Sequence record: NC_023557.1 | DNA length: 64,000 nucleotides | Strand: one strand, 5' to 3' | In this document: positions 3,181-62,988 of the stretch, piece by piece | Layout of the letters: every line of letters begins with the position of its first letter | Position numbering within the stretch: position 1 is the stretch's first letter | Notes under the pieces: model-generated | What the model saw: only the letters and a program-made list of their open reading frames with translations | The model's database searches: none | What the model was told of the DNA's origin: nothing | Made by a program: the position numbers and the translations under genes

Positions 3181-3208
3181 GAGGAGGGGTAGCCCTCCTC
3201 TTATGCCG
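3181..3208 (+). terminator. Hairpin followed by TTATGCCG
   Basis: GAGGAGGG-gtag-CCCTCCTC then TTATGCCG. Confidence 0.65.
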
Positions 3209-3220
3209 TTTGAGGGTAGC

Positions 3221-3445
3221 ATGGCAAAAAAGGAACTCACGATGAAGCGACTTCAGATAGACATCTCTGAACAGGGCTTTAGCAAACTCAATGCACTCAA
3301 GGTGAAAATGGAAACCACTGCCATGGGTAGCGTTGTCAGCCGCGCCTTATCGATTACCGATCGTTTGTTCACCGCCAAGGAGAAAGGCAGTAAGATCCTG
3401 ATTGTGGATAAAGACGGCAACGTCACCGAAATCGAATTACTGTAG
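3221..3445 (+). CDS. Ribbon-helix-helix (CopG-like) DNA-binding protein
   Basis: KRLQIDISEQGFSKLNALK...SVVSRAL fits an RHH beta-alpha-alpha pattern; GAGGG SD before ATG 3221. Confidence 0.55.
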   Translation: MAKKELTMKRLQIDISEQGFSKLNALKVKMETTAMGSVVSRALSITDRLFTAKEKGSKILIVDKDGNVTEIELL

Positions 3446-3453
3446 AGGTTAAC

Positions 3454-3681
3454 ATGGCTTGGTCCAAACGCCGTGCAAAGAAACGCATCATTCACTTACG
3501 TGGTTTTCATTATCGTGTTCAATCACGTAGTATCGCAATCTGGGAACAGTATCGCGAATATCATCAAAATCGACCATTTGGATCTGGCGTTGGTTTATTG
3601 ATGTTACTTGACCCTGAAACTGGTTGCCCAATAGGAGCTCATCGTGGCCTTAAGCAAAACAAAAATAAAGCGTCGTACTAA
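3454..3681 (+). CDS. Small basic hypothetical protein
   Basis: GAGG SD; K/R-rich N-terminus. Confidence 0.6.
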   Translation: MAWSKRRAKKRIIHLRGFHYRVQSRSIAIWEQYREYHQNRPFGSGVGLLMLLDPETGCPIGAHRGLKQNKNKASY

Positions 3682-3928
3682 TGCGCTGTATAACTACAAA
3701 ACGCTGGTTGAACGCATTAGCTATAAATGCATGATAGCCCACATCGATGCTCAGGGCATCAAGCTTGAATTGAACCGCACGGGTTCGTCAATTAAAAGTG
3801 AAGACATTCCTGCTGCAAAAGAAGCCCGTCTTGCATTGAAACGCGAAATCGTCCGTCTGCGGAATATCCAGGGGCGTCGTCGTATCGTGAATGCCGGTAA
3901 GATCAAAGCGGCAATCAGCCAGTATTAA
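3644..3928 (+). CDS. Small basic hypothetical protein
   Basis: AGGAG SD 6 nt before GTG 3644; followed by a terminator. Confidence 0.6.
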   Translation: MALSKTKIKRRTNALYNYKTLVERISYKCMIAHIDAQGIKLELNRTGSSIKSEDIPAAKEARLALKREIVRLRNIQGRRRIVNAGKIKAAISQY

Positions 3929-3931
3929 TAG

Positions 3932-3959
3932 AAGGGACTTCGGTCCCTTTATTTTTTTT
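3932..3959 (+). terminator. Intrinsic terminator
   Basis: AAGGGAC-ttcg-GTCCCTT plus T-rich tract. Confidence 0.85.
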
Positions 3960-3984
3960 GTCTTGAATAATGAAATTTTTACGC

Positions 3985-4023
3985 TGTAGAAAATCTTAGA
4001 CCTATATAACGGCACTGATAGAG
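3985..4023 (+). promoter_or_regulatory. Putative early (virion RNAP) promoter
   Basis: TGTAGAAAATCTTAGACCTATATAAC-N5-TGATAG, near-identical at 4591 and 27235; core resembles the phiKZ early TATATTAC motif. Confidence 0.65.
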
Positions 4024-4050
4024 TAATCTAAATTAACTTACGAGGTTATC

Positions 4051-4581
4051 ATGAAAAACACTACTTTTCTAATTGAGACCCTGAAACGTACCTTGGAAGA
4101 GCTGGACCAGGCAACGTTATCAACTGAAGAAAAAATTGAATTAACCACCATGGTTGAGAAAGAACATTTTGCTAAGCTGTTCGGTGTCCGCGCAGAAGAA
4201 ACCACTCAGTTAAGTGAGCGCGATTTCTCTAAACTGACCGGTTATCAGTACAACAGTGTTTACGCGGGGTTAGATTTGGTTGGTAATTTTGACTGGGTAA
4301 TCACGGCGGATGGCGCAGTCGTAACAAGAGAAATGCCTCATCACGGCAGTAACCATTGGTTGCCACCGCGCAGGCAATTTATATTCAGACTGATCGATGA
4401 AGGTCGTGAAATACTTAATGAAGGCACTAGACTGCTTGTTATCAGAATTGAGAACACCATCACCAAAGAGGTCTTTTCAATTAACTTTGAAGTTGCTGAT
4501 ATTCAAATCGGCAGTGCGGTTGTTAAAATGGTTGAGCGTTATCTGTTCGATTATTACAGGGTCAGCGTCAAGAAACTGTAA
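4051..4581 (+). CDS. Hypothetical early protein
   Basis: 176-aa ORF with GAGG SD, downstream of the repeated promoter motif. Confidence 0.75.
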   Translation: MKNTTFLIETLKRTLEELDQATLSTEEKIELTTMVEKEHFAKLFGVRAEETTQLSERDFSKLTGYQYNSVYAGLDLVGNFDWVITADGAVVTREMPHHGSNHWLPPRRQFIFRLIDEGREILNEGTRLLVIRIENTITKEVFSINFEVADIQIGSAVVKMVERYLFDYYRVSVKKL

Positions 4582-4590
4582 AATATGAGT

Positions 4591-4629
4591 TGTAGAAAAT
4601 CTCAGACCTATATGACTGTGGTGATAAAG
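4591..4629 (+). promoter_or_regulatory. Putative early promoter
   Basis: TGTAGAAAATCTCAGACCTATATGAC-N5-TGATAA. Confidence 0.65.
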
Positions 4630-4672
4630 AGTAGTAAATACTCTTGCCCTCACTCTACTTAGGAGTTTACTC

Positions 4673-4969
4673 ATGAGCACTGTCTTCGAATACCGCAACA
4701 TTATTAAAGATGCTCGTGCTAAAATTGCTGAGCTTGAAGAAAAGATCGTGAAACTTCGTAAGAAGCAAACACGAGTAGATAACAAATACGGCAGTTGTAA
4801 TAGCTTTGCTGAACTCTCTGCAAACCTGCGAGAGTCTACCCGGTTTGACAGAGCGATTGCTGAAATAAAAACTGAAATCGGTGAACTCGATAAATTAATT
4901 TATCGTACTGGTGAACTACTCATCGCTGCGTATAACAAATCAACCAACATGCAACCTATTGGTTGGTAA
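4673..4969 (+). CDS. Hypothetical coiled-coil early protein
   Basis: AGGAG SD; heptad-like helices. Confidence 0.75.
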   Translation: MSTVFEYRNIIKDARAKIAELEEKIVKLRKKQTRVDNKYGSCNSFAELSANLRESTRFDRAIAEIKTEIGELDKLIYRTGELLIAAYNKSTNMQPIGW

Positions 4970-5010
4970 CTAACATCAATTTAATTTAACCTATTGTAAG
5001 GATCACCATC

Positions 5011-5301
5011 ATGACTGTAACTTTCTCTCAGCAAATGCAGGTTGTCGAATCTATCGCTGTGATGCAGGAAAAAGCAATGGAACTGCAAGTTGCTACCAAA
5101 GCGTGTTACGACGAAGTCACCCGTCTGGCCAACCGACTGGCTGACATCAACGATCCACTCGGCTTTCAGAAAGCCTATGAAGAATATCGTACCAAGCTGG
5201 CAGAAGCGGATGTATTAGCCGATGCTACTCGCCTGGCTTACAATATGTCAGACGCTGCACTGAAAACCATCCTGGGTGAAGCTAACCCAACCTTTCATTA
5301 A
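5011..5301 (+). CDS. Hypothetical helical early protein
   Basis: AAGGA SD; 96 aa. Confidence 0.75.
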   Translation: MTVTFSQQMQVVESIAVMQEKAMELQVATKACYDEVTRLANRLADINDPLGFQKAYEEYRTKLAEADVLADATRLAYNMSDAALKTILGEANPTFH

Positions 5302-5340
5302 TAGTTAATTACTCATCGTCATTACGCCCCGGAGAAACTC

Positions 5341-5550
5341 ATGAGCGATTTTATTAGCAACCTGTTCGAAATCGCTATTGCAGTTTTTTCTGTAGTGGCG
5401 ATGGTTAAATTGATTAAATCTGATAATGCCTATATTGCAGAAACAGTTCGTATCATCGATGCCTGCGCTTCTTTACAGGAAGGGCAAGTGATCCAGGGCG
5501 AAGTGGTTAACACCAACACCCAGACAACCAACTTATACATCACCCATTAA
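5341..5550 (+). CDS. Small membrane-anchored hypothetical protein
   Basis: GGAG SD; hydrophobic LFEIAIAVFSVVAMV segment. Confidence 0.65.
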   Translation: MSDFISNLFEIAIAVFSVVAMVKLIKSDNAYIAETVRIIDACASLQEGQVIQGEVVNTNTQTTNLYITH

Positions 5551-5572
5551 TCTACTTGTAAGGAATACACCT

Positions 5573-6034
5573 ATGTCAAACTCTATGTTCATCTGCCTGT
5601 CACTGTTAGCGGTTATCTCTGTCTCTGGTGGTATCGCCTTTGCCAAGAGCCTGTCACCGACCCATGCCATGATGACCGCCTTTGCTTACTTACGTGAGCA
5701 ACTCGGTGATGACGCAACACAGTACGAATACGATAAACGCTCACACCTTCTTTGCATGACAAACCTGGTGGAAACTAACTATGCCCTGGTCTGCGGTAAG
5801 CACTTTGAACGCGCAGAACAAAAACGTGCATGGTTAGTTAAGGAAGCAGAAGAGATCCAGCTCACCCCGCGTCAACAACTGATGCTGCTGGACTCCTTAC
5901 TGAACCTGAACACCCGTCCTGAACAAGCAAAGAAAATTGTTAAAGTACGTTCAACCAAAGAGATCGTTGACTTGGCTGCGCAGTATGCGAGCGACAACCG
6001 TCGTATCGAAGCTCCGCTGGCCTTGTTCCGCTAA
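5573..6034 (+). CDS. Hypothetical protein with N-terminal signal or TM segment
   Basis: MFICLSLLAVISVSGGIAFA; AAGGA SD. Confidence 0.7.
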   Translation: MSNSMFICLSLLAVISVSGGIAFAKSLSPTHAMMTAFAYLREQLGDDATQYEYDKRSHLLCMTNLVETNYALVCGKHFERAEQKRAWLVKEAEEIQLTPRQQLMLLDSLLNLNTRPEQAKKIVKVRSTKEIVDLAAQYASDNRRIEAPLALFR

Positions 6035-6068
6035 TGTAAGCTGTAGTGTATTGGTCACCTCATGACCG

Positions 6069-6102
6069 GAGCTCACCCTAACCGGTGGGCTCTTTTTTTT
6101 TT
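6069..6102 (+). terminator. Intrinsic terminator
   Basis: GAGCTCACC...GGTGGGCTC hairpin plus T10. Confidence 0.85.
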
Positions 6103-6125
6103 GTCTTCTTTTTTTTTGTTCGGGG

Positions 6126-6134
6126 ATTATATGT
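6126..6134 (+). promoter_or_regulatory. Candidate late promoter (TATG core)
   Basis: ATTATATGT, identical at 61457; phiKZ late promoters carry TATG at the start site. Confidence 0.35.
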
Positions 6135-6159
6135 AGTCCATATTAGCTAAGAGGACATT

Positions 6160-6564
6160 ATGGCAGAGCGTGTAGTTCCAACCATGTCCGTAACCGGGTA
6201 CGTAACCGGCGTGACTGAAACCATTGACCGGATGTTTGCCTACTGGCTGACCGCACAATACTCTCAAACGTATCTTGCTCGCGGTAACATTCACTCCCTT
6301 CAATATTTGATCCAGCAGTATGACGGTAACCCAGAACGTCTGTGTGATGCGGTGGTGAAAGACCTCAAGAACTATTTTACGGGTCCGTTTGATGCCGCCA
6401 CGGTTACCTGTAATCCACGTTATGCGACCAGTGAGCGTGATGAGAAGTTCTATATGCTGGAGATCGATATCAAAGTCTCTAATGGCGATATCGGTTATGA
6501 TGTTGGTCGCCGTCTGCTAGAGATTGAAGACGGTATCTTTAAACGCATTGTAGGTACTCTGTAA
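6160..6564 (+). CDS. Putative virion structural protein (possibly gp25-like baseplate/sheath initiator fold)
   Basis: 134 aa, helix followed by alternating beta strands; GAGGA SD; fold call is inference only. Confidence 0.45.
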   Translation: MAERVVPTMSVTGYVTGVTETIDRMFAYWLTAQYSQTYLARGNIHSLQYLIQQYDGNPERLCDAVVKDLKNYFTGPFDAATVTCNPRYATSERDEKFYMLEIDIKVSNGDIGYDVGRRLLEIEDGIFKRIVGTL

Positions 6565-7166
6565 TGGCACAAACCGAACACGATAAAATGATGCACCAGC
6601 GGGCAGGGTCGATTGAGCGTCGACTGGCACAGGCCGCCCAGCATGAACGTAATCCCCAAATCCAGGAAGCGGAGTTCACACGGGTATTCCTGCCGATGTT
6701 TGTTGGCGGGGGCGAATACATTAATCAGGATGCTTGGGTAGCGGTTGCCGGTTCTGTTAATAATGAAGTCGATGTCTTCCGCGGGCAAGAGTATCTTTAT
6801 ACCCTGCCAGCCTTAGCCATCCCGATTCGCTCTGAGATCTCCAGTCGTAGCCAGAATGGTCGCATGGGTGATAACTGGATGGGCACAGGCTTAAACGCCG
6901 CAGACGATCCAGGCTCAATTGAGAGCGTGATGTCGATCGATGCCAAGGGCAAACAGGTTGCGTTAGCCAGTACTGCTGAGGAGCACATGGCACGCTGGGA
7001 TGAGGTGTTCAAACGTTACGGGCTGGACTACCGCGTAATCCGTGCTGACCTCCATGAACGTAAAACAGGTCAGAAAGTTAATCCCAACATTATCGATCAA
7101 TCAGATAAGGCATTAGCGACTAAACAGGTTGAGCTCGATGACAACGGTGATTACGAAGACTACTAA
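6564..7166 (+). CDS. Hypothetical protein
   Basis: TAATG coupling to the upstream gene; 200 aa with acidic C-terminus. Confidence 0.75.
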   Translation: MAQTEHDKMMHQRAGSIERRLAQAAQHERNPQIQEAEFTRVFLPMFVGGGEYINQDAWVAVAGSVNNEVDVFRGQEYLYTLPALAIPIRSEISSRSQNGRMGDNWMGTGLNAADDPGSIESVMSIDAKGKQVALASTAEEHMARWDEVFKRYGLDYRVIRADLHERKTGQKVNPNIIDQSDKALATKQVELDDNGDYEDY

Positions 7167-7176
7167 AAAACCTGGC

Positions 7177-8283
7177 ATGGTACGGATTATTCAGACAGGC
7201 GATATTCACCTCTGTCATAAGCGCACCCCAACGGCGAACATTATCCGTACACTGAACTATATCTTTTATGAAAACGAATCCTTGGCTGAAACTGACCTTA
7301 TCATCCTTGCCGGGGATGTCTGGGATACTTTGGTAACCATGCCTAATGACGATGCATTATTAGCTCGTCAATGGATTCGTAAGTTTGTCGAAGATTGCGC
7401 ATACCACAATGTGATCTTAGATGTGTTAGAAGGCACTCCTGATCATGATTGGGAGCAGTCTTCTGAATTCACCCTCTTTGAAACCAATTGTGAAGTGCGC
7501 TACATCAAAACCCTGCAGATTGTCCGTCATGAGCACTTGGATTTAAATATCCTTTATGTGCCCGATGAATGGCGCCCAACCATCGAAGCGATCTGGGAAG
7601 ATGTGTGTGTGGCGATGACTGGAGCTGGACTGGATAAGGTGGATGTCGCAGTGGTGCACGGGGGATTTGATTTTAACTTCCCGCCGGAGTACAACATCAA
7701 AGGCCACAGCGCTGAGCGCTTTAGTAGCATTGTCAAACATGCGGTGTTTGCTAACCACATCCACAAAGCCCAAAGCTTTATGAAAGTGCACGGTCCAGGT
7801 TCACCGGATCGATTAGCACAGGGTGAGGAAGGGGACAAAGGTTACCATCGGGTGGTGATTGATCAGAAGACCGATCAGATGCGCATCCAGTGGATTAAGA
7901 ACCCACATGCCTGGACCCATATCGCACTCAACGTTGCGGGTATGTCAGTTGAGGAGATCGTCGCCAAAGCCAAAGCGATCGCAGCACCACTAAGAGCCGG
8001 CAGTTATCTGCGTTTTGATAACGGTGATCCCTTAGTGGTGAAAGCGGTACTGTGGGCATTGAAAGCAGAAATCCCGCATGTGATCTTGGAATACAAAAAC
8101 AAGAAGCAAGCAGGGATCACGCAAACGCACCAAACTTATGCCAAGAAGTTTTCTGGCACCCACATTAACCGCAACAATGCCAAAGAGTCGATCGTCGGCT
8201 GGTTGCAGGGTAAGGGGTTAACGGACGACTCACAGGGTCAGTATTTAAGTGATATCTTACAGCGCGCCATGGCGCTGAAGTAG
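7177..8283 (+). CDS. sbcD: SbcD/Mre11-family metallophosphoesterase nuclease
   Basis: GDIH, GDVWD, GTPDHD, VHGG, NHIH and PGS motifs in the canonical order; start could be 7138. Confidence 0.85.
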   Translation: MVRIIQTGDIHLCHKRTPTANIIRTLNYIFYENESLAETDLIILAGDVWDTLVTMPNDDALLARQWIRKFVEDCAYHNVILDVLEGTPDHDWEQSSEFTLFETNCEVRYIKTLQIVRHEHLDLNILYVPDEWRPTIEAIWEDVCVAMTGAGLDKVDVAVVHGGFDFNFPPEYNIKGHSAERFSSIVKHAVFANHIHKAQSFMKVHGPGSPDRLAQGEEGDKGYHRVVIDQKTDQMRIQWIKNPHAWTHIALNVAGMSVEEIVAKAKAIAAPLRAGSYLRFDNGDPLVVKAVLWALKAEIPHVILEYKNKKQAGITQTHQTYAKKFSGTHINRNNAKESIVGWLQGKGLTDDSQGQYLSDILQRAMALK

Positions 8284-8293
8284 TGAGGGTGTT

Positions 8294-9094
8294 ATGGCTG
8301 ACAGGACCATGGGGATCTTGCCGATGTCAGTCGGCACCTCCCTTTCATTTGAAGCATTAATGGCAAAACCCATTGAACCGATTGAAACCTTGGTGTTGAA
8401 CATCGGGACCATCTTTCGTAATGTCTATCAGGCGTATGATACCGATGACCGCGATCGCTTAGGGATTGATAAGTTGCATGACGATATGATTGCAGACATG
8501 TCAGCGATTTATGACATCTTAAAAGACATCGGGAAAGCGGGCGTGCCAGATTACAAACTGTATCACGGGCGTTATGAACGGTTAGCTTCCGCCTTTCCAC
8601 TGGCGAAGATCTGGGAGCCTTCTTCGGATATTCAGAAGACGTACGCACGGCTTGAACGCAACGTCCTGGAGAAGGTGATCAAGACAATGCGGGGGTTAGT
8701 GCAAGAGGTGGATCACACCTTACCGATTTCCGTAAAGAATACCTATGTGATGACCCATCACATCGTAGACCTGGTTGTGCCGGCTGGTTACGGTGAAATT
8801 ACGTTGGTGGAATCCCATACAGGTGCCTTGAAGAAGAAACCGTTATGGCACACCAAACTCACCAACGGGCGTTCGCTTGAGCGTATTCCGTTTAACCGAC
8901 TGACCTTGCAGGTGTTCGGTGATAACTCTGTAAACTTCAAAGCCAACAGCTTTAAATACAAAGCGGCACTGATGAAGCTTGCAGAGGAGAACAAGTGGAC
9001 ACCCATGGCAACCCGTGATCGTATCAAGCTTGGCATTGAAACGTTAAAGGACGCGCAGCTGAAAGCGGACTTGTCAAAAATGCTCAGTGTATAA
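8294..9094 (+). CDS. Hypothetical protein (core-block position; possible 5'-nuclease-like fold)
   Basis: 266 aa with GAGGG SD, between the nuclease and the ChmC-like gene; fold is a guess. Confidence 0.6.
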   Translation: MADRTMGILPMSVGTSLSFEALMAKPIEPIETLVLNIGTIFRNVYQAYDTDDRDRLGIDKLHDDMIADMSAIYDILKDIGKAGVPDYKLYHGRYERLASAFPLAKIWEPSSDIQKTYARLERNVLEKVIKTMRGLVQEVDHTLPISVKNTYVMTHHIVDLVVPAGYGEITLVESHTGALKKKPLWHTKLTNGRSLERIPFNRLTLQVFGDNSVNFKANSFKYKAALMKLAEENKWTPMATRDRIKLGIETLKDAQLKADLSKMLSV

Positions 9095-9157
9095 ATCAAC
9101 ATAACTGCTCTAACTTTATAGAGCAGTATAACTAATTAGTCCTAAAAGGAGCAACAC

Positions 9158-9928
9158 ATGGCTGGTCCACAGCGTCAATTTAAAGCTCGTGAAAAATCTT
9201 ACTTGAGCGAGTACTCGATGAACCTTCAGGGCCCGGTGCAAGCTGGCGCTCAGTTCCCTGCTGAATTCCGCATGGCCTTTGCAGCCAACAAGGTGGCCAT
9301 TCAGGTTGAAACCAAAAACCGCGATAACAAAAATAACGGTCGCTTTGAAATCGTTGTTCCTTATCTGGGCGCTATCGGTGTGCTGAATACGATCGACAAG
9401 CTTATTCAGGACAAAGCACGCAGTAAGCTGCAATACAAAGTGAAAGACTTCGTTTACTTCGGTAAAGGTAACAAGTCTGACTCGCCAATGATCAAAGGCA
9501 CCCTGACTGTAGGGCGTGATAACGAAGGCTGTCTCTATATCGGCATGTCCGGTAAAGACATCACCCCAATCAAATTCATCTTCGCCCTGCCGGCGCATGA
9601 TGAACTGTGCGATGACTCAGGTCAGCGTCTGGGTGATGCTGAGCACTCTGAGTTTGCTGCGAAGAACTTCGTGGTCGGTTACCTGGGCCTGCTGCCAGTG
9701 GTGATGGGTATTCACTATACCCCACCTGAGCCGAAGAACCCAGATGGCGGTAATGGCGGTGGCGGTGGTCAAGGCGGTGGCGGCTGGGGCGGTAATGGCG
9801 GCGGGAACCGTGGCGGTGGTAATGGCGGGGGAAACCAGTACAGCCAAGGCGGCAATCAGGGCGGCGGGAACGCCTCTGGTTCTGGTAGCAGCGGCGGCGG
9901 TGACTTCGCAGATGACCTGCCTTTCTAA
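9158..9928 (+). CDS. ChmC-like nucleic-acid-binding protein (phiKZ gp67 position) with Gly-rich tail and SSB-like C-terminal tip
   Basis: Beta-rich ~190-aa domain, G/N/Q-rich tail ending DFADDLPF; lies just upstream of the gp68-gp69-gp70-nvRNAP block. Confidence 0.6.
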   Translation: MAGPQRQFKAREKSYLSEYSMNLQGPVQAGAQFPAEFRMAFAANKVAIQVETKNRDNKNNGRFEIVVPYLGAIGVLNTIDKLIQDKARSKLQYKVKDFVYFGKGNKSDSPMIKGTLTVGRDNEGCLYIGMSGKDITPIKFIFALPAHDELCDDSGQRLGDAEHSEFAAKNFVVGYLGLLPVVMGIHYTPPEPKNPDGGNGGGGGQGGGGWGGNGGGNRGGGNGGGNQYSQGGNQGGGNASGSGSSGGGDFADDLPF

Positions 9929-9980
9929 ATAGACAGGACGATGAATTCAGCATAAGTCATTGTCTGGGTTCATCCACAAC

Positions 9981-10011
9981 AGAGGAGGGTGAAAACCCTC
10001 CTCTTGTGCCG
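9981..10011 (+). terminator. Hairpin followed by TTGTGCCG variant
   Basis: AGAGGAGGGT-gaaa-ACCCTCCTCT then TGTGCCG. Confidence 0.65.
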
Positions 10012-10329
10012 TCCACGGACTGGGCTATAGCTCACGCTTACTCCCCAGGGTATGGGCGATTCAAACGCCGACATTTCAGGAAGAATACGCGCAAGCGACC
10101 CCCACGGCCATGTAAGAATAAAAGTAAGTTGATGAAGGTGGCTCAGAGTAAGTTGGGTTATGCGATCATGACAGGCAGGGTAATCAGGCAGGCAGTATGT
10201 GATGAGTGTGAGGCGGATGAACGTATCGAGCCTTTGCAAGTCAATTATGCTAAGCCGTATATCGTGCTGTGGCTTTGTCCACGTTGTCATGCTGACTGGT
10301 ACCTGACAAATGAGCCGGCGTACAGCTGA
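10006..10329 (+). CDS. HNH-like zinc-finger protein, catalytic His apparently lost
   Basis: CDEC...NYAKPYIVLWLCPRCH matches the CxxC...HHxDYxKPxxVxWLCxxCH family pattern, but HH is replaced by LQ; start uncertain. Confidence 0.6.
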   Translation: MPSTDWAIAHAYSPGYGRFKRRHFRKNTRKRPPRPCKNKSKLMKVAQSKLGYAIMTGRVIRQAVCDECEADERIEPLQVNYAKPYIVLWLCPRCHADWYLTNEPAYS

Positions 10330-10350
10330 GGGTTTCGGCCCTCCTTTATG
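10328..10350 (+). terminator. Short hairpin followed by TTTATG
   Basis: GAGGG-tttcgg-CCCTC then CTTTATG. Confidence 0.45.
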
Positions 10351-10366
10351 ATACCAAGAGGTGACA

Positions 10367-10759
10367 ATGTTTGAAGAACCGACACATGTTCGTTATGCAT
10401 TGGTAACCCGCCCTCAACACGATGAGAAGGTAACACTGACACCCTGTGATAATCTGATCGAAGCGGTACACAAACAAGACCGTTACGATTCGATTGCTTC
10501 TGTGGTGATCTGTGATGACTTCAAAGCGCAGGCGGTGGATGTCCGGTTACACTTTATCACGGGTCCGGATGACTCGGCGTACCGTGCAAAGGAAATGTTA
10601 CTGGCTTCTTTTATACGCCAGAACAATGGTTGGATTCCCCGTCATGTTACGGGCTGTATGATAGACGCTTTTGATGACGAGACCCTTACCTTCATCCAAA
10701 GCCTACTATCTTTCTTTGATTCACACAGAACCAATTTTGCTCGTTCGCTTGCTTCGTAA
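10367..10759 (+). CDS. Hypothetical protein
   Basis: ~130-aa ORF with GAGGTG SD. Confidence 0.65.
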   Translation: MFEEPTHVRYALVTRPQHDEKVTLTPCDNLIEAVHKQDRYDSIASVVICDDFKAQAVDVRLHFITGPDDSAYRAKEMLLASFIRQNNGWIPRHVTGCMIDAFDDETLTFIQSLLSFFDSHRTNFARSLAS

Positions 10760-10767
10760 TTTTTATT

Positions 10768-10803
10768 GCTGGATGCGGTAAACCCGCTCCAGCCCTTATG
10801 CCG
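10768..10803 (+). terminator. Hairpin followed by TTATGCCG
   Basis: GCTGGA-t-GCGG-taaac-CCGC-TCCAGC then CCTTATGCCG. Confidence 0.6.
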
Positions 10804-10864
10804 CCTGTAATATCGTACATTATTCTACTATCTATTAGAGGAACAAATAATCTTAAATATTTAC

Positions 10865-10877
10865 AAGCCTACATTAT
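10865..10877 (+). promoter_or_regulatory. Putative early promoter core
   Basis: AAGCCTACATTAT, matched at 16006 and 34906. Confidence 0.55.
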
Positions 10878-10936
10878 CAACATGTCATAGCAGTATGTGA
10901 TTTAACCTACCGTGTGATCACCGGGAGCAGCCACCA

Positions 10937-12481
10937 ATGATGTTTAAGTACACCACCAAATCGACCTCTGAGAAGGTATGGTTAAACACAATCATAGTTG
11001 TCAGTCGTCATGGCGAAGAGATTGTGTTTAACGAAAACAACTTCTTCAAGTCGGAAGAGAAGGACCACAAAGGAACCTTCGACGAACTGAATCTCTATCT
11101 CTTGCGTTGCCTGAGTAACGAGCAACGTGACCGGATGTTTGAGTTCTATAAGCAAATCAGCTATATCCTGAAAACGGAACTGTCGGTCACGAAGGTCCTT
11201 CTGCCAAAGTTGCAGCCTTTGGTTAAAGGGATCTACGACCTGGTTAGCTTAAGCGACCTGAACGTCTTCATGTATGAAAACAAACTGACGCACATCCCGA
11301 ACAGCGTACTGGATACCATCCCGTCCTCGAAAGAGTACCCGACGATGACCACGTATGTGAAAGCGGATTACGTCAAGCTGGTTAACCTGTCGGTATTGTT
11401 GCATCTGATGGCGCCGATCATTGCGGACTATGTCAGCAAGGTCAGTGAGTCAACCGGCAAGCAGTTTAAAGAACACGCCGCCTTACCGTTACTGGAATAC
11501 ACCAACATCATGTATTCTGATGAGATGGTCAAGCTGCGTAACTTCGTGACCGCCAACTGCAGTAAAAAGCCAGTGCCGTTATCAGCCACCTTAGAAGGGA
11601 TGTCAGAAGAGTCGTTCCCGGATTGGATGCTGGCTTCGGTCATTGCACGTAAGCTGTGTATCAACCATGTACGGCGTGGGGATGAAAACGGACACCTGGT
11701 TGCTGCGGTGTTTGCGTACATCAACTACAACATCAAACTGGATGGTAAGTTTGGTGGTGGGGTCATGCCAAAGAAAGAGCGTCGGGGTCTGGGAGAAGAT
11801 GAGCGCGAGAAAGCGGTCATTGATAACTGGAAGATGAAAGAGGATGTGGACAAGATCGATATCTTAGCCTGTGCTGTTGGCTTTGATGATCCGGTTGCCG
11901 CGGCCAAGTTCATTGAGCCTGACATCGATCCAAACATGGTGATCCGTTGCCTGAATGCGATTCCACAAGCCTGGAACTTCAGCATGACTCGTCATCAGAG
12001 CATTCTGTTGCAGTGGGTAGTGGGTGAGCTTCTGCCGCATATCGGTGATACGTATGTGCCGCCGTTGACCGTTGAGTATTACGATTACGATGTCTGCGTG
12101 AAGTTGGTCGGGATTGCACAAGCGGTACTGTGGCATCGGGGTTATCCGAAGCTTGCAGTGTTTGCTGCGACTTATCCGTCTGAAGTGGATGCCGGCGGGA
12201 TGCCGAATGCCGTGATGCCATTAGAACTGAAAGTGATGGCAGAGCTGGAAGCGTATTACGGTAATGTGCGTCTGGGTAAACGTCAGGACAGCAGCGATGG
12301 CTTGGTGCATAAAACCATCAACACCATGGTTACCTCATTGTTAGAAGATGATTATCAGGTCGTAGGCCCTGATGAATTGTTAGCGTTATCTGGGGTGGTA
12401 GATTTCGAACGTCGAATCGTCATTCCTGAAAGCCTATATTACGATATTGCTGGCTACATTCGTTTCTTAGCCACTCGTTAA
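10937..12481 (+). CDS. Non-virion RNA polymerase specificity subunit (phiKZ gp68-like)
   Basis: 514 aa; position directly before the gp69/gp70-like genes and nvRNAP beta/beta'; synteny-based call. Confidence 0.65.
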   Translation: MMFKYTTKSTSEKVWLNTIIVVSRHGEEIVFNENNFFKSEEKDHKGTFDELNLYLLRCLSNEQRDRMFEFYKQISYILKTELSVTKVLLPKLQPLVKGIYDLVSLSDLNVFMYENKLTHIPNSVLDTIPSSKEYPTMTTYVKADYVKLVNLSVLLHLMAPIIADYVSKVSESTGKQFKEHAALPLLEYTNIMYSDEMVKLRNFVTANCSKKPVPLSATLEGMSEESFPDWMLASVIARKLCINHVRRGDENGHLVAAVFAYINYNIKLDGKFGGGVMPKKERRGLGEDEREKAVIDNWKMKEDVDKIDILACAVGFDDPVAAAKFIEPDIDPNMVIRCLNAIPQAWNFSMTRHQSILLQWVVGELLPHIGDTYVPPLTVEYYDYDVCVKLVGIAQAVLWHRGYPKLAVFAATYPSEVDAGGMPNAVMPLELKVMAELEAYYGNVRLGKRQDSSDGLVHKTINTMVTSLLEDDYQVVGPDELLALSGVVDFERRIVIPESLYYDIAGYIRFLATR

Positions 12482-12516
12482 CTTAATTTAATCTACACCG
12501 TTAGGAGTCACCCAAG

Positions 12517-14034: not shown

Positions 14035-14048
14035 GGAAAAGATAAACC

Positions 14049-15593: not shown

Positions 15594-15607
15594 TCTATAA
15601 ATCTGAT

Positions 15608-15640
15608 CGGCATAAGGAGAGGCTACGGCCTCTCCTCTTT
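15608..15640. terminator. Bidirectional hairpin between convergent genes; TTATGCCG on the minus strand
   Basis: CGGCATA-AGGAGAGGC-tacg-GCCTCTCCT-CTTT. Confidence 0.75.
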
Positions 15641-15645
15641 CAGAG

Positions 15646-15981
15646 TCATTTTTTATTTGAGTTGTAGAGATCTCTAATAGATGACAGAAGTGAACTGTTT
15701 TCATCTATTAGAAGAATGTCCGTTGTAATGACATCCCATTTAAAGGGATTCATGATGTTGTTGATTCGCATAGTTAACCAATGCATGTGATAAGGAACGC
15801 CGTATTCCAGTAGTAGCATGCGAAAGTCACCACGTTCTTCGTACTGTTCAAGAGGGGTAGGGGGAGTAAACTTAGTTGCATTCGCCCGAAGCAAATCGAG
15901 ATGATGCACCAGGACCTGACGAAAGCCGTGATCTTGAAACAGCTTATCGGTCGGGTGTTTGATTTCGTTGCTGACTCGCAT
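15646..15981 (-). CDS. Small putative virion protein (LysM/T4 gp53-like baseplate motif)
   Basis: EYGVPYHMHWLTMRINNIMNPFKW resembles the YG...W..L..N...DP..W pattern of T4 gp53-type proteins. Confidence 0.5.
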   Translation of the reverse strand: MRVSNEIKHPTDKLFQDHGFRQVLVHHLDLLRANATKFTPPTPLEQYEERGDFRMLLLEYGVPYHMHWLTMRINNIMNPFKWDVITTDILLIDENSSLLSSIRDLYNSNKK

Positions 15982-16005
15982 ATGCGTAAATACCTATACT
16001 TGTTT

Positions 16006-16018
16006 AAGCCTATATTAT
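16006..16018 (+). promoter_or_regulatory. Putative early promoter core upstream of nvRNAP beta
   Basis: AAGCCTATATTAT. Confidence 0.55.
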
Positions 16019-16051
16019 CTCTTGGCAGTTAGGTTGATAAAAGGAATCATA

Positions 16052-18163: not shown

Positions 18164-18173
18164 GGGGTGTGTG

Positions 18174-21703: not shown

Positions 21704-21718
21704 ACTGACTGTGTAAAA

Positions 21719-21750
21719 GACCAGGGGGCTTACTCCTTGGTCTTTTATGC
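21719..21750 (+). terminator. Hairpin followed by TTTTATGC
   Basis: GACCAGGGG...TCCTTGGTC then TTTTATGC. Confidence 0.6.
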
Positions 21751-21787
21751 TTTCTTTCCTTTTCTTTTTGTTAAGGATACACAGCTT

Positions 21788-26528: not shown

Positions 26529-26739
26529 AGTTAACATCGAGCAGGCCAATCGTTATGAGGGGTCTACCGATGATTTGGTCCAGCAAGCTAATGATCGTGG
26601 TTTTCTCCAGGGGATTCGTATCACTTCTGGCGAGGACATCGATCCAAGCATTTGGACGCCTGAGAAGATCGAAAAGTTGAAAGCTGCACTTCGACATATT
26701 CGTGACTCAGAACAACGCATCAAAGGTAGCCAGGGGTAA
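26509..26739 (+). CDS. Hypothetical protein
   Basis: GAGGG SD before GTG 26509; stop lies inside the downstream hairpin. Confidence 0.55.
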   Translation: MDINPTEVNIEQANRYEGSTDDLVQQANDRGFLQGIRITSGEDIDPSIWTPEKIEKLKAALRHIRDSEQRIKGSQG

Positions 26740-26757
26740 CACCCTGGCTTTATGCCG
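26728..26757 (+). terminator. Hairpin followed by TTATGCCG
   Basis: AGCCAGGG-gtaaca-CCCTGGCT then TTATGCCG. Confidence 0.65.
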
Positions 26758-29551: not shown

Positions 29552-29600
29552 CGGCATATAGGCCCTCCGTTACGGAGGGCCTTTTATGACATCTTTTTTT
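29552..29600. terminator. Bidirectional hairpin between convergent genes
   Basis: CGGCATAT-AGGCCCTCCG-tta-CGGAGGGCCT-TTTATGAC. Confidence 0.75.
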
Positions 29601-36466: not shown

Positions 36467-36495
36467 AGGAGAGCTTCGGCTCTCCTTTTATGCCC
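36467..36495 (+). terminator. Hairpin followed by TTATGCCC
   Basis: AGGAGAGC-ttcg-GCTCTCCT then TTTATGCCC. Confidence 0.7.
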
Positions 36496-41680: not shown

Positions 41681-41732
41681 CAGCATAAGGAGAGGCCTCG
41701 CGCCTCTCCTGTTTATGCCGTCTTTTTTTTTT
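41681..41732. terminator. Bidirectional hairpin flanked by GCATAA and TTATGCCG
   Basis: CAGCATA-AGGAGAGGC-ctcgc-GCCTCTCCT-GTTTATGCCG then a T-run; lies between convergent genes. Confidence 0.8.
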
Positions 41733-42828: not shown

Positions 42829-42858
42829 CGGCATAACGGAGCAGGCAACGCCTACTCC
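42829..42858 (-). terminator. Hairpin followed by TTATGCCG (minus strand)
   Basis: Plus-strand CGGCATAA-C-GGAGCAGGC-aac-GCCTACTCC, downstream of the Gly-rich gene. Confidence 0.55.
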
Positions 42859-43933: not shown

Positions 43934-43977
43934 CGGCATAAGGGAGTGGATACCCTGACCGTAGCCAAGGCATCCAC
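43934..43977 (-). terminator. Hairpin followed by TTATGCCG (minus strand)
   Basis: Plus-strand CGGCATAA...GTGGAT.CC...GG.ATCCAC, just after the DNA polymerase stop. Confidence 0.5.
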
Positions 43978-45707: not shown

Positions 45708-45807
45708 GATGAATGATAATCCTATGTCAAAACACTACAAAGTGCACCAGTGTTTAATACGCGTTATAACATCAGGCGTGCAACTACATTTATACAAAGG
45801 AGATCAC

Positions 45808-50327: not shown

Positions 50328-50379
50328 CGGCATAAAGGCCTGGCCCTCCGCAAGGAAGGCCAGAGCCTTGCTTATGCCG
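50328..50379. terminator. Bidirectional hairpin flanked on both sides by CGGCATAA/TTATGCCG
   Basis: CGGCATAA-AGGC-CTGGCC...GGCCAG-A-GCCTT-GC-TTATGCCG between convergent genes. Confidence 0.8.
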
Positions 50380-53338: not shown

Positions 53339-54364
53339 TTATTTTTGATCCTTCGGAACCCACCACTGGAATTCGTTCGTCATCACGTCGATATAAGGAT
53401 AACCAATAAAGTTGTAGCGCTGCATTTCACCCGGGGAGATTTTGCGGAAGAACGTGTTACGGTTCGCGGCTTTCATCTGCGGGTTAAATAACTCGACACA
53501 ACTGTTGAAATCCAGGATCAGGGATTGCGTGTTATAGCGCCAGCCCACACACTGCCAGTTACAACTGATTTGGTTATTGTTCTTGATCAGTGGGGTGTCT
53601 TTGGTGGTGCCAAAGTCAAACGCATTACCAATCGGGTTGGTGGTACAGATTGCTGCGTAGGGTGCACCGATCTTCGTCACATAGCGTGAAGTCTGATCCA
53701 GGATGATGCGATAGAAGCGCATGGTGTAATCAATATAGTTGTTAACAATGGCGTCCCAATAGGGAACCATGTCGCCAAGGTATACCGATGAGCTGTACGT
53801 TTGCAGCAGATCCAGAATCATGGTGATCGGGTCACCTGAGATGTTGGTGTGCGTTGATGTCACCTGATAGGCTTCATTAAACTCCGATTGCCCATCGACC
53901 ATCGACCAGGTTTCTTTACGTGAGCCTGGTGGTGCAGTAAAGGTATCGATCACGATATCGGGAAAACCGGTCATCGATTCCAGGGTGTTTGATAAAATGG
54001 ACACGAAGGCCTGTTGGTTATCAAACAGTCTGGAGTAGCTTTTTCGATCAATTGTGCCGGTCGCATCAAACATCGAACGGATCGCACCTGGGATCGTATC
54101 GGCGTTGTTTGAAGCAAGCGAAAGCAGCTTTTCTTGTCGATTCAGATTATCGTATGACAGGTTAAGGATTGGGCGTGTGAAAAAGGTATACCCCATGACG
54201 TCTTTGTTGATGGGTAGAAAGGCGCTACGGTTACTGAATTTGTTCAAACCCCAATAGTTATGCGCAAGCGATGAGGTTACACTACCATACCCGGACTCCC
54301 TTGCAGCCGAGTCAATACTCTCGGTCCACAACCCAGGATTGTAGTCGTCATTGTCATTGGCCAT
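53339..54364 (-). CDS. Virion structural protein, probable tube-like baseplate hub component (phiKZ gp88 position)
   Basis: 341 aa with a tube-protein-like beta pattern; synteny. Confidence 0.55.
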   Translation of the reverse strand: MANDNDDYNPGLWTESIDSAARESGYGSVTSSLAHNYWGLNKFSNRSAFLPINKDVMGYTFFTRPILNLSYDNLNRQEKLLSLASNNADTIPGAIRSMFDATGTIDRKSYSRLFDNQQAFVSILSNTLESMTGFPDIVIDTFTAPPGSRKETWSMVDGQSEFNEAYQVTSTHTNISGDPITMILDLLQTYSSSVYLGDMVPYWDAIVNNYIDYTMRFYRIILDQTSRYVTKIGAPYAAICTTNPIGNAFDFGTTKDTPLIKNNNQISCNWQCVGWRYNTQSLILDFNSCVELFNPQMKAANRNTFFRKISPGEMQRYNFIGYPYIDVMTNEFQWWVPKDQK

Positions 54365-54417
54365 TACTCATCACCTCTTTGAAATAGAATATCCGTTGAA
54401 TCCATAGGAGTACTTTT

Positions 54418-55584
54418 ATGTTACCATTAGTTACGGGGGCGATTACACTGGCCAGTTCGCTTGCGCTTGTCGCCGAACGTATTCTGGCAGCCAAGAAAGC
54501 TGCTGGTGAAGTCGCTGGTACTGTTGACAATACGTTGGCCACGTTAGGCCAGATGGGCACACGTGATTTGGTAACCTTTACCAAAGTGACCCGCATGGAG
54601 CCTCTGGTGTTGTTAGATGATCGTTTGAAGTTTGATCCTTCGACCCCGGAGATCCTGCAAGTACTGACCAGTTTGATTGCCGGCTACTATACCCAGGCGT
54701 TTGCCCTGCTGGGCCAGGTCGACGGTATTGACGTCATTGGCACCCTGGATAAGCTGAACCCGTCACGTACTGGTATTGGTCTGAACAACTTTGAAGGTGA
54801 TCTTGAGAAAGACGGCCTCCATAAATTTAGTAACCAGTCAAATACCCCTCTCTATAGTATCGGGCTGGAAGCACTGACTGAAGTGCAGAGCGCCGAGAAC
54901 AAGCCGGTTAAAATCCAGACCGATAAAAATGTCGTGGCTGATATTTCGGCACCGACTAACCTGGCGCTGGGTAAGATGATCAAGGTGACCTTGTCAGCTA
55001 ATGGCAACACCATTGAGATCCCAATCACCATCCGTGTGAAACCTGTCACTACCGGTAGCGATGCCGTTACGGCGATTCTGGCTATTGGTACCACGAAGAA
55101 CACCGTGGCTGAGCGCTGGAACCGTTTCAAAGCCGGTGAGCTGACCTTCACTAACCTGGCCACTGGTGATGACGTGATTCGTCAACACAAGAAGATCCTG
55201 GTGCAGGATACCTCTGGCTTCTATGCCGAGATCACCCGTCGTGCCCGTGGTAATGCGAAGAAAGGTGCCCTGTCCGGTAACCTGTCGCTGGCTACGGATT
55301 CTAACGTGGTAATGATCTCTTCAGCCACGGCGCTGGATGTGGGTCGCGAGCTCGGTGGTGAACTGTCCAACTTCCGTATCCGTGAAGCGATGTTCGCCAA
55401 GGTGTACTCTAACATGCTGATCATCGTGGATGACCTGCGTGGCATGGTCTCCTTCTACTACCGCGGTGAGTCATTACCAAACGTACTGTCGCTGCAGGAT
55501 ATCAAACTGTATAACAAAGGCAGCGGTCCAGACATCATGTCGATCTTCAGTGCGTTTGCTGAAAACAAAATCCCTTCCCTTTAA
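54418..55584 (+). CDS. Virion head/inner-body protein (phiKZ gp89 position)
   Basis: AGGAG SD; SIGLEA site; first gene of the head operon. Confidence 0.6.
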   Translation: MLPLVTGAITLASSLALVAERILAAKKAAGEVAGTVDNTLATLGQMGTRDLVTFTKVTRMEPLVLLDDRLKFDPSTPEILQVLTSLIAGYYTQAFALLGQVDGIDVIGTLDKLNPSRTGIGLNNFEGDLEKDGLHKFSNQSNTPLYSIGLEALTEVQSAENKPVKIQTDKNVVADISAPTNLALGKMIKVTLSANGNTIEIPITIRVKPVTTGSDAVTAILAIGTTKNTVAERWNRFKAGELTFTNLATGDDVIRQHKKILVQDTSGFYAEITRRARGNAKKGALSGNLSLATDSNVVMISSATALDVGRELGGELSNFRIREAMFAKVYSNMLIIVDDLRGMVSFYYRGESLPNVLSLQDIKLYNKGSGPDIMSIFSAFAENKIPSL

Positions 55585-60071: not shown

Positions 60072-60082
60072 ACGGAGAAAAC

Positions 60083-61453
60083 ATGTCCGCGATTAATGAC
60101 TTTCTATTTACTGCGGGCATGGAGGGGTTTAACGACCCCTCCTCTATACCGCCCGTTGGTATAGTTGTGCCCTTTTTTGGTGTTGAAGAGTTCGCCGAAG
60201 CGGATGCTGAACAATCTGTACGCATGACAGAGATGAACCAGCAAGCTGAAGCGATTCAACGCCTGCAACAAACGCTGGTCTACATCAACGCTCACCGTCC
60301 GACCTTTGACCGTGAGAACGCCGCTGTCGTGCAGCAAGCGCTGGGTGAAGTACAGGTACTGATGCCCGACATGGAAGACCCGGTCACCATCATGGGGTCG
60401 CTGGAGCATTATACCCCGGCTTACACCAACCACCTGCTTGCGCACGGTATTGAAGGCATTGGTGATAAGATCCTGAGCGTGGTCAAGAAGATCATCGAAC
60501 TCTTGAAGAAAGGTTATGCCTTCTTGAGTAAAGCCATCCAGGCAAAGGGTGTGGTCTTCGGTAAACAGAAGCGCGAACTCGATGACCTCAATGCGTGGTT
60601 TAAAGAGCAACGCAAAAGCAACGATAAGCCCGCTACCACCGCCGGCAATGAACCTAAGGTTGTTACGATCACTGCCCCGACCTATCTGTACACCGTCGAC
60701 AGTAACAAACCGTTAGCGGCAGATCGCTTAGCAAGCGAAGTGGCAAAGTACAACAAATTCCTGCAGGCCTTCTCGGTTGATTTCATCCGGGCGCATATTA
60801 CCCTGGGCGATCTCTATATTCGTGCACTGGGCGGTCTGGATATTGCCAGCACCAGTAACGAAGAGTTGTTCACCAAGATGTTTAAGGGTCAGTTTAAATA
60901 CCAGGCCTCGGGTGCATCGCTGTACACCAAACGCAACGGCGAGATGTGTGATATCGAAACAGTTGGGTTGATTGGCGGGATTGGCTTTAAAGCCTCCATC
61001 GCGAATATCCTGGTCGCACCGCTTGAGATGACTGCAGACGGTTCTAACCAGCGTAAGTTCTTCAAGCAGATGAACGGGTTATACAACTACAGTTTTGTCT
61101 CCAAAATAAAAATGGATGGCAGTACGGTAGGGAATACCCCAATCTATGCTTGCAGTCTCGCTGACGCTGAGCGGCTGGTGAATCAACTTGATATGTTGAC
61201 CAACTGGATGATTAACAGTCAACACGACGAAGAGATCCGTGACTTTAATAAGCGGGTGACTGAGTGTGTGGATAAGCTGGCTGATCGTGCCGGTCGTCTG
61301 GGTAATGACCGCAGTGATTTTATCACCACTGTGATCAACGCTTTGTCTGGTATCTCCAGTGGTCTGGAAAATGTGTCCCGTGGCATGAATCAGCAAACGA
61401 ACACATTGATCAACAACTTGCGTGAGTACGTTACCAAATCCACGAAAGCGTAA
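60083..61453 (+). CDS. Internal head protein paralog
   Basis: TAGMEGF leader; GSLE and HGIE sites then IGDKILSVVKKIIELLKK. Confidence 0.75.
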   Translation: MSAINDFLFTAGMEGFNDPSSIPPVGIVVPFFGVEEFAEADAEQSVRMTEMNQQAEAIQRLQQTLVYINAHRPTFDRENAAVVQQALGEVQVLMPDMEDPVTIMGSLEHYTPAYTNHLLAHGIEGIGDKILSVVKKIIELLKKGYAFLSKAIQAKGVVFGKQKRELDDLNAWFKEQRKSNDKPATTAGNEPKVVTITAPTYLYTVDSNKPLAADRLASEVAKYNKFLQAFSVDFIRAHITLGDLYIRALGGLDIASTSNEELFTKMFKGQFKYQASGASLYTKRNGEMCDIETVGLIGGIGFKASIANILVAPLEMTADGSNQRKFFKQMNGLYNYSFVSKIKMDGSTVGNTPIYACSLADAERLVNQLDMLTNWMINSQHDEEIRDFNKRVTECVDKLADRAGRLGNDRSDFITTVINALSGISSGLENVSRGMNQQTNTLINNLREYVTKSTKA

Positions 61454-61456
61454 ATT

Positions 61457-61465
61457 ATTATATGT
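61457..61465 (+). promoter_or_regulatory. Candidate late promoter (TATG core)
   Basis: ATTATATGT upstream of an internal head gene. Confidence 0.35.
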
Positions 61466-61546
61466 GTTAACGGCCCTGCAGGAAACGCGGGGTCTTATCA
61501 CAATACGATCGTATTTAATTTCATGAAATTAAGGTAGAGACTCACT

Positions 61547-62935
61547 ATGTCTATTCAAGCATTTTTAAACCTCGGCGCCGAGGCTTTCGAAGACGCACCG
61601 GTTGTTGAAGAAGCACCGGTTGTAGTTGTTGCACCAGTACCAGAAGAAGTGATCGAGTTGATCGCTGAGCGTGACGACGCGAACCTGGCTGTTGAGCTGG
61701 CACAAGACTCTGCTGAGATCTCCTCTGCCTCTCGTCAGGTTGAAGAATTCGCTGCAGCGATCGAGCGCGTTGAAAACGTGCAGGCGTCAATGGAACACTT
61801 CATCGAAGCGGGCCTGTCGCAGAAATCAGCAATGATGCTGCATCAGCAGATCAACACCGTCATGGCCTCTATCGGTAAAGACGGCGCTGCAATCGGTGGT
61901 GGTCTGGAAAACTTCGACAACGAAGAAGCCAGCATCGCGTTACTGACTGCCGGCCTGGAAGCTCTGAACAGCGAGAAAGCCTCGCTGGGTGAACGTATCC
62001 GTGCAGCCATGATCAATGGTGGCGATAGCGTTAGCAAATTCTTCAGCAAATTCCTGACTGCATCAGGTCGCATGAAAGCGCGCGCACAAGCAATCTCTAA
62101 GGCTGCAAAAGCCAACGGTTCTGCTTCTGCCGAAGTAACGCTGAAAAGCAAATACCTGACCGTGAAAGGTGGCGCTGCCAGCACCAACCTGAAAGCGGAC
62201 ATCGCAGCATTCCACAAATTTGCTGAAGACGGCGCAGCTCGTTTCTTCAAAGATGGCGGTGCGTTCCTGAGCGGCGATATCCTGTCTGCTATCAAAACCA
62301 TGGGCAACACCACTACCATGGAAGCAGCAGCGAAAGTCGTTAGCGGTCTGAAATACCCAGGTTACCCAGGCGCTACTATTGCGGTGCAGGATAAACCTGC
62401 CTTCACCATCAAGCGTACTGAAGTGGTCCTCGGTGGTTACGCCGTGTTTGATCTGCAGTACAAAACCACTGGCGGCGATACGCAGGCTGAACTGGTGCAT
62501 GAGCTGAAAGCGCTGGGTAAAAACCGCGTGCACGTGAAACAGGCGCCGGAAGAGAAAGGCAAATCAGAATTCAGCCAGACTGTGTCTGCTGCTGATGCCG
62601 CAGCGATTGCTGATGAAGTCGCCAAACTGGCTGACATCGCCGCTACCCTGCAGCGTAACATTGCCTGGATGGGTCCGTTCACCAAATCTCTGATCAACTC
62701 CAGCATTGCTGCGAGCGCTACTCAGGGTCGTGCGGCGAATGCTGAGAAGGGTGTTGCGGTTGTTCTGGATGCCCTGGCGCGTGTGCCAACTGGCGTGTTC
62801 CAGTCTGTACAGAGCCTGAGCTGGGAACTGTCTTCTGCCATCCTGAAAGTTGGCGATGCGGGTCTGAAGGTTGCGAACAAAGTAGCAAAAACTTCTGACA
62901 GCAGCGTCCCGGCTGGTAACGAAGCCACTGCATAA
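61547..62935 (+). CDS. Internal head protein paralog
   Basis: LGAEAF leader; ASME, GGLE and AGLE sites. Confidence 0.75.
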   Translation: MSIQAFLNLGAEAFEDAPVVEEAPVVVVAPVPEEVIELIAERDDANLAVELAQDSAEISSASRQVEEFAAAIERVENVQASMEHFIEAGLSQKSAMMLHQQINTVMASIGKDGAAIGGGLENFDNEEASIALLTAGLEALNSEKASLGERIRAAMINGGDSVSKFFSKFLTASGRMKARAQAISKAAKANGSASAEVTLKSKYLTVKGGAASTNLKADIAAFHKFAEDGAARFFKDGGAFLSGDILSAIKTMGNTTTMEAAAKVVSGLKYPGYPGATIAVQDKPAFTIKRTEVVLGGYAVFDLQYKTTGGDTQAELVHELKALGKNRVHVKQAPEEKGKSEFSQTVSAADAAAIADEVAKLADIAATLQRNIAWMGPFTKSLINSSIAASATQGRAANAEKGVAVVLDALARVPTGVFQSVQSLSWELSSAILKVGDAGLKVANKVAKTSDSSVPAGNEATA

Positions 62936-62955
62936 GTAGCACATCTGTAACCTTA

Positions 62956-62988
62956 GGGGGAGAGGGGTTTCCCTCTCCTCTTATACCG
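62956..62988 (+). terminator. Hairpin followed by TTATACCG variant
   Basis: GGGAGAGGG-gttt-CCCTCTCCT-C-TTATACCG. Confidence 0.6.

Follow-up and report, generated by a model that had tools for sequence, protein, structure and literature searches.

Why do so many gene ends of one jumbo phage carry a GC-rich stem followed almost at once by the same octamer, TTATGCCG, and does this element stop transcripts, process them or start new ones? The window analysed is a stretch of 64,000 nucleotides (nt) from Erwinia phage Ea35-70 (NC_023557.1; Agricanvirus; 271,084 base pairs (bp), 50% GC), corresponding to record bases 186001-250000; a 4.7-kb piece of it is 100% identical to the Ea35-70 record. The whole genome was rebuilt from six annotated pieces and matches the window exactly over 186001-250000. 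The annotated products include several split RNA polymerase subunits as well as a PhuZ tubulin and a nuclear shell protein. Sequence identity between the beta' subunit and its counterpart in phiKZ-like KTN4 is 28%, and a homolog of phiKZ gp123 is present, as in phiKZ-like phages with virion and non-virion RNA polymerases. Judged by its gene content, Ea35-70 is a phiKZ-like nucleus-forming jumbo phage with multisubunit RNA polymerases. We conclude, with a probability of roughly 80%, that the hairpin and TTATGCCG together form the Ea35-70 counterpart of the phiKZ-type transcription terminator, a kind of signal already mapped by RNA sequencing in phiKZ and 201phi2-1, as opposed to a hidden promoter.

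An initial annotation of the window had described the recurring pair of hairpin and octamer, and both the recurrence and the pairing were borne out. The window holds nine exact copies of TTATGCCG over both strands, compared with 1.9 ± 1.3 in shuffled sequence (none of 100 shuffles reached nine), and a GC-rich stem-loop lies directly 5' of all nine. The genome-wide enrichment beside stems that had been proposed as a check was also found: permuted octamers occur 8.6 times on average and the exact word 41 times, and a hairpin of -12 kcal/mol or lower, ending -3 to +5 nt from the word, precedes 38 of the 41, compared with 243 of 6000 random positions (4%). This energy was chosen because a cut-off of -9 kcal/mol let through 37% of control words; a hairpin search allowing G-U pairs and mismatches was likewise too permissive, and stricter hairpin tests were used. 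When perfect stems of at least 6 bp were demanded, they were present at 25 of the 41 exact copies and at 125 of 20,000 random positions. The three exact copies lacking a hairpin are intragenic, and their number is compatible with chance.

Tolerating one or two mismatches to the octamer in intergenic DNA of the whole genome yielded an element family of about 75 members. These have an invariant core TTATGC, with a consensus of T (69 of 75), T (75), A (74), T (75), G (73), C (68), C (57) and G (58) followed by a variable ninth position. Across the family, the distance from the end of the stem to the word is -3 to +4 nt, the median hairpin energy is -18.4 kcal/mol, and an additional T-run lies further 3' in 16 of the 75. 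Within the genome the stems vary widely between copies while the tail is constant. All the variants that had been listed, at 10004, 21745, 36488 and 62981, are present; the minus-strand copy at 29552 had to be corrected, as it reads ATATGCCG, that is CGGCATAT on the plus strand and not CGGCATAA. The sites are given here in window coordinates, with the state of the orthologous site in phage AH06 (beta' subunit 93% identical to that of Ea35-70) for some of them.

3180..3208, plus strand: hairpin and TTATGCCG, 8 nt past the stop codon of Ea357_226; the AH06 ortholog has a changed stem and TTATGCTG
9981..10011, plus strand: hairpin and the variant TTGTGCCG (10004), after gene 238; identical variant in AH06
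10768..10803, plus strand: hairpin and TTATGCCG, after gene 240, with a candidate early-promoter word next; octamer kept and stem changed in AH06
15608..15637, minus strand: hairpin and TTATGCCG, after an unannotated open reading frame (ORF) of 111 amino acids at 15646-15981; faces the end of plus-strand gene 243
21714..21752, plus strand: hairpin and TTATGCTT, then T-rich sequence (21745), after helicase gene 247; AH06 is without the tail
26728..26757, plus strand: hairpin and TTATGCCG, 11 nt past gene 255
29552..29582, minus strand: minus half of a putative bidirectional terminator, ATATGCCG, between convergent genes 260 and 261; compensatory stem change in AH06
29560..29591, plus strand: plus half of the same putative terminator, TTATGACA then a T-run; stem in common with 29552..29582, genes 260 and 261
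36467..36495, plus strand: hairpin and TTATGCCC (36488), between genes 269 and 270
41681..41710, minus strand: minus half of a putative bidirectional terminator, TTATGCTG, convergent genes 277 and 278
41688..41720, plus strand: plus half of a putative bidirectional terminator, TTATGCCG then a T-run, convergent genes 277 and 278
42829..42858, minus strand: hairpin and TTATGCCG, after minus-strand gene 280
43934..43977, minus strand: hairpin and TTATGCCG, after minus-strand DNA polymerase gene 281
50328..50369, minus strand: minus half of a putative bidirectional terminator, TTATGCCG, convergent genes 285 and 286
50335..50379, plus strand: plus half of the same putative terminator, TTATGCCG; stem in common with 50328..50369, genes 285 and 286
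62954..62988, plus strand: hairpin and TTATACCG (62981), after gene 294

A same-strand gene ends just upstream of 67 of the 75 family members. The element lies a median of ~10 nt past the stop codon, with stop-to-stem distances mostly of 1-36 nt, and the next start codon is found 18 to 470 nt away with no fixed spacing. Across the annotated junctions of the whole genome, all 18 divergent ones lack the element, whereas only one of the 18 convergent ones does; of the 17 that carry it, 13 have it in both orientations. The octamer does flank the stem on both sides at convergent junctions, as first reported for the window (29552/29584, 41681/41713 and 50328/50372); more generally, the mirrored CATAA stands 5' of the stem in 23 of 33 elements facing an opposing gene versus 4 of 34 between tandem genes. 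The octamer itself is equally well preserved at convergent and tandem sites. The octamer thus follows the hairpin in the direction of the arriving polymerase, and is duplicated across the stem only where two polymerases would meet; it behaves as a directional stop signal and not as a promoter. Likely early genes and structural genes are followed by it alike, the major head protein gene being one example (270235). Judged from gene context, the element thus marks where transcription units end, and does so in both directions where they converge, as is typical of phiKZ-type terminators.

The comparison with mapped terminators of related phages strengthens this assignment. Putzeys et al. 2024 (microLife, PMC10914365) mapped 133 phiKZ termination regions by ONT-cappable-seq, and 61 terminators gave the consensus BCCYCCCCHWWDGGGRRGGBYTTATKYYGT, in which TTAT-K-YY-GT comes after a hairpin. 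TTATGCCG conforms to the phiKZ tail TTATKYYGT, and the Ea35-70 element has the same arrangement of a stem-loop plus TTAT-K-YY-G. Within the part of the phiKZ table considered, distances were counted by eye in the -60 to +40 sequences (PMC10914365); in 17 motif-bearing rows the RNA 3' ends lie 2-10 nt past the stem (median ~7), inside the octamer. A closely similar motif (motif A) is found in 201phi2-1, and eight 201phi2-1 terminators, picked partly for motifs, showed activity in uninfected Pseudomonas chlororaphis when assayed with a fluorescent reporter (PMC11512511).

The terminators of phiKZ and 201phi2-1 share with those proposed for Ea35-70 a GC hairpin followed directly by TTAT-K-Y-Y-G, a location at gene ends, and a bidirectional form between convergent genes with mirrored CATAA/TTATG flanks; the phages belong to one family, are nucleus-forming and have two multisubunit RNA polymerases. 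In contrast to phiKZ (TTATGYYGT, genome of ~37% GC), the tail of Ea35-70 (50% GC) varies less (TTATGCCG), its ninth position is not conserved, and the element is known here from sequence alone. By analogy with these relatives, Ea35-70 RNAs would end at the element. The termination role suggested in the initial annotation is therefore retained, as strand and gene context fit it and the motif carries mapped RNA 3' ends in phiKZ. The specificity for phage polymerases suggested with it finds no support: the 201phi2-1 terminators of the same family also worked in a reporter read by the host polymerase, and their activity in uninfected cells makes the signal not obviously phage-polymerase-specific.

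Both halves of the element are maintained between relatives. At the orthologous AH06 sites the hairpin is kept by compensatory changes, e.g. a C-G pair replaced by T-A at 29552, and the octamer is kept at most of them, with the tail lost at 21745. Seven further jumbo-phage genomes were then analysed with a 5-mer test of the 3' flanks of strong hairpins after gene ends, with no motif presupposed. TATGC, TTATG, ATGCC and TGCCG were the top flank 5-mers in Ea35-70, Xanthomonas RTH11, Klebsiella Eowyn and Ralstonia RP12 (45-58% GC), where TATGC-bearing hairpins number 35 of 63, 31 of 81, 33 of 86 and 37 of 72, respectively. The top 5-mers were T-runs in PCH45 and SPN3US, and TTATT and TATTT in EL and pTD1; a TTAT start is found in nearly all phages compared. 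New here is that, in the genomes compared, the full TTATGCCG tail is common to phages of Erwinia, Xanthomonas, Klebsiella, Ralstonia and Pseudomonas, spanning 37-58% GC. A tree of the gp123 homologs is largely without resolution and does not place the tail as ancestral or as having arisen once. The element offers a reliable rule for marking transcription-unit ends in Agricanvirus and several other jumbo-phage groups, ends of a kind that standard terminator finders miss.

How does the element compare with known classes of terminator? Bacterial intrinsic terminators likewise have a GC-rich hairpin just past the gene, and further likenesses are the U-rich first four tail positions, the RNA 3' ends ~7 nt past the stem in the relative phiKZ, and the T-run downstream of some Ea35-70 copies. 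The difference is that the Ea35-70 tail is a fixed word and not mere base composition. A canonical U-tract, with at least about five U in the 8 nt past the stem, is absent, as tail positions 5-8 are G-C-C-G. Indeed, a hairpin-plus-T pattern scan of window positions 1-20000 lists 3931 and 6068, which shows that the U-tract terminators originally placed at 3932 and 6069 are real, and misses 3201, 10004, 10796 and 15608. T7 class II signals, to which the octamer had been compared, are hairpin-independent and act on a single-subunit polymerase. The comparison holds as an analogy only: termination is sequence-dependent in both, but the word differs, a hairpin is present at 38 of 41 Ea35-70 copies, and the Ea35-70 polymerases are multisubunit.

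In the mechanism we consider most likely, a GC-rich RNA hairpin would form just past the stop codon of the gene and the polymerase would release the transcript a few nt later, ~7 nt past the stem, within the fixed tail UUAUGCCG. This tail would occupy the place that the U-tract has in bacterial terminators, with UUAU acting as a short U-rich release segment. Between convergent genes, the mirrored arrangement CGGCATAA-stem-TTATGCCG would allow one stem to stop transcription in both directions. Our best guess for the fixed G-C-C-G, offered tentatively, is that phage-encoded machinery may read it as a signal to pause or to release the transcript.

Several points weigh against the assignment as a terminator or against parts of it. 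A search for sequencing runs containing the phage gave two of DNA type and none of RNA; statements on RNA ends in Ea35-70 are carried over from its relatives, and in phiKZ the nanopore 3' ends cannot separate termination from trimming back to a protective hairpin. The UUAUGCC RNA-DNA hybrid is not weak, such that the classical release mechanism is not obviously applicable. The family of 75 is approximate, having been built on a crude ORF map: its antisense hits at 9097 and 58669 are probably chance matches, and the automatic list lacks the real site at 36488 owing to an over-long ORF start in that map. Finally, among the ten phages compared, the residues of the polymerase pocket that binds TATG do not distinguish those with the tail from those without it, leaving a mechanistic link between pocket and tail unsupported.

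This pocket is that of phiKZ gp123, which contacts the TATG promoter core as the beta-like subunit of the non-virion RNA polymerase. Its Ea35-70 homolog is Ea357_002, annotated only as 'polymerase' (L003:1041-2729 = record 1041-2729; 26% identity, E=3e-52, BLASTP), and both phages have the same succession of genes after the major head protein gene. Ea357_152 and Ea357_153 had been considered as the gp123 homolog and were set aside in favour of Ea357_002, as neither matched any solved structure. A comparison of 14 pocket residues over ten phages found F151, H331 and Q466 invariant and several others nearly so; the TATG pocket is probably conserved family-wide. Such conservation fits TATG as the late promoter core of Ea35-70, and is neutral as to whether the pocket takes part in termination.

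It is nonetheless conceivable, if rather doubtful, that the octamer is a sequence-specific stop read by the phage polymerases, with the beta-lobe pocket for late promoters also capturing the non-template TATG. Once captured, TATG would hold the elongating enzyme back, or put it under strain, a few nt past the hairpin, allowing the hairpin to release the RNA without a U-tract. Non-template-strand pause signals are known, such as the Bacillus NusG TTNTTT motif and the sigma70-dependent pauses. As in these, reading of a short fixed word in the non-template strand near a hairpin could slow the polymerase and aid termination; pocket-residue conservation does not track the Ea35-70-type motif. Were the pocket involved, a promoter core would double as a terminator element, and conservation of the tail over 37-58% GC would reflect a constraint of the phage machinery and not of the host. 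More broadly, a fixed tail across such diverse hosts and GC contents sharpens the question of how multisubunit phage RNA polymerases terminate without a U-tract, and whether the promoter word TATG has a role in this. Purified phiKZ polymerase is already available in several laboratories.

Among the alternatives to a terminator, we consider it improbable that the element serves RNA processing or stability, with transcripts ending elsewhere and being cut at, or trimmed to, the hairpin and the tail acting as an RNase or RNA-binding-protein site. The scatter of phiKZ 3' ends in the table rows considered is what trimming could give, a fixed single-stranded word is typical of protein recognition, and UUAU shares its A/U-richness with many endonuclease sites. 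However, base pairing between the octamer and its mirrored copy at convergent junctions would bury it in the stem, a mild argument against an RNase site, and the spacing from stem to 3' end is as expected of intrinsic termination. In addition, the motif-selected 201phi2-1 terminators cut downstream reporter expression in uninfected cells (PMC11512511).

A terminate-and-restart module, in which the hairpin stops the upstream transcript and the octamer TATG is a late promoter where the non-virion polymerase restarts at the G, is very unlikely. The phiKZ late promoter core T(-3)ATG(+1) is contained in TTATG, is needed for initiation and is bound in the pocket of the beta-like subunit, whose core residues are conserved in Ea357_002; four of its letters, and often five (TTATG), are identical to part of the octamer. 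In the portion of the phiKZ promoter data considered, many late promoters have TTATG or CTATG, and two late starts, P049 and P075, use a further TATG located 5-10 nt past a terminator. The placement of the element argues against a restart. It is absent from the divergent junctions, where promoters are needed, and present at nearly all convergent ones, where a start would give only antisense RNA; the octamer is as well kept at these as at tandem sites. Unlike phiKZ late promoters, which are expected at 5' ends of transcription units upstream of late genes, it occurs at 3' ends with unfixed spacing to the next start codon. Moreover, TATG alone is insufficient for phiKZ initiation, and the DNA upstream of the octamer is a GC-rich palindrome, in contrast to the model late promoter p119L. 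Of the 119 phiKZ starts P008-P126, the portion of the start table considered, none falls on a terminator's own TATG, and several promoters lie 20-40 nt past a terminator. Together, the junction census and the start table leave little room for terminator-promoter coupling as the cause of octamer conservation, and the coupled late promoter of the initial annotation is not supported.

Lastly, it is barely credible that the element acts at the DNA level, in protein binding, replication or recombination, or that it is a dispersed mobile repeat: the mirrored forms are long DNA palindromes and two near-identical bidirectional cassettes recur at three junctions each, but orientation tracks the direction of transcription and not of replication, compensatory stem changes point to RNA structure, and wide divergence of the stems with the tail alone fixed disfavours a mobile repeat.

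Candidate promoters of Ea35-70 were noticed elsewhere. TATGT often occurs 30-85 nt before the start codons of structural or late-looking genes, in AT-rich DNA without a hairpin, marking candidate late promoters whose count is not clearly above chance. A second recurring word, GCAGAAAATCTCAGA-CCTAYATNAC, is found in plus-strand intergenic DNA, often followed by GTGA and in several copies 20-40 nt past a terminator. The phiKZ early promoter (…AAGATCTATATTAC) is similar, and the Ea35-70 word probably serves the virion polymerase as its early promoter.

Window 32585-32678, 45707-45808 and 54364-54418, and record 267765-267908 and 145792-145995: candidate late-promoter regions with TATGT
Window 3984-4010, 4590-4616, 10851-10877, 27234-27260 and 34892-34918, plus strand, and record 66500, 78907, 85454, 89157, 98581 and 271049: the word GCAGAAAATCTCAGA-CCTAYATNAC

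Inspection of the sites also bears on gene annotation. The ATG within the octamer creates spurious long ORF starts at four sites, as for the ORF starting at 3203 in place of the annotated start at 3242 (window 3203-3445), and gene callers may over-extend starts at octamer ATGs. The 111-amino-acid minus-strand ORF at 15646-15981, between genes 243 and 244, is unannotated in Ea35-70; its equivalent is annotated in AH06, Eowyn, KTN4, PCH45, SPN3US, RP12 and pTD1. Immediately before it, window 10937-15593 contains three adjacent paralog-sized genes of ~510 amino acids each (Ea357_241-243), at the position of KTN4_090-092. KTN4_090 is annotated as a non-virion RNA polymerase subunit, and gene 241 may be a sigma-like subunit.

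Finally, two near-identical terminator cassettes are each present at three distant sites (L005:18691-18730, L006:3894-3933 and L002:15687-15726; record 95478-95520, 170613-170655 and 270200-270242). Five of the six sites are convergent junctions, and the sixth (270235) follows the major head protein gene. From these repeated cassettes, it appears that whole terminators may have been copied or exchanged between loci.

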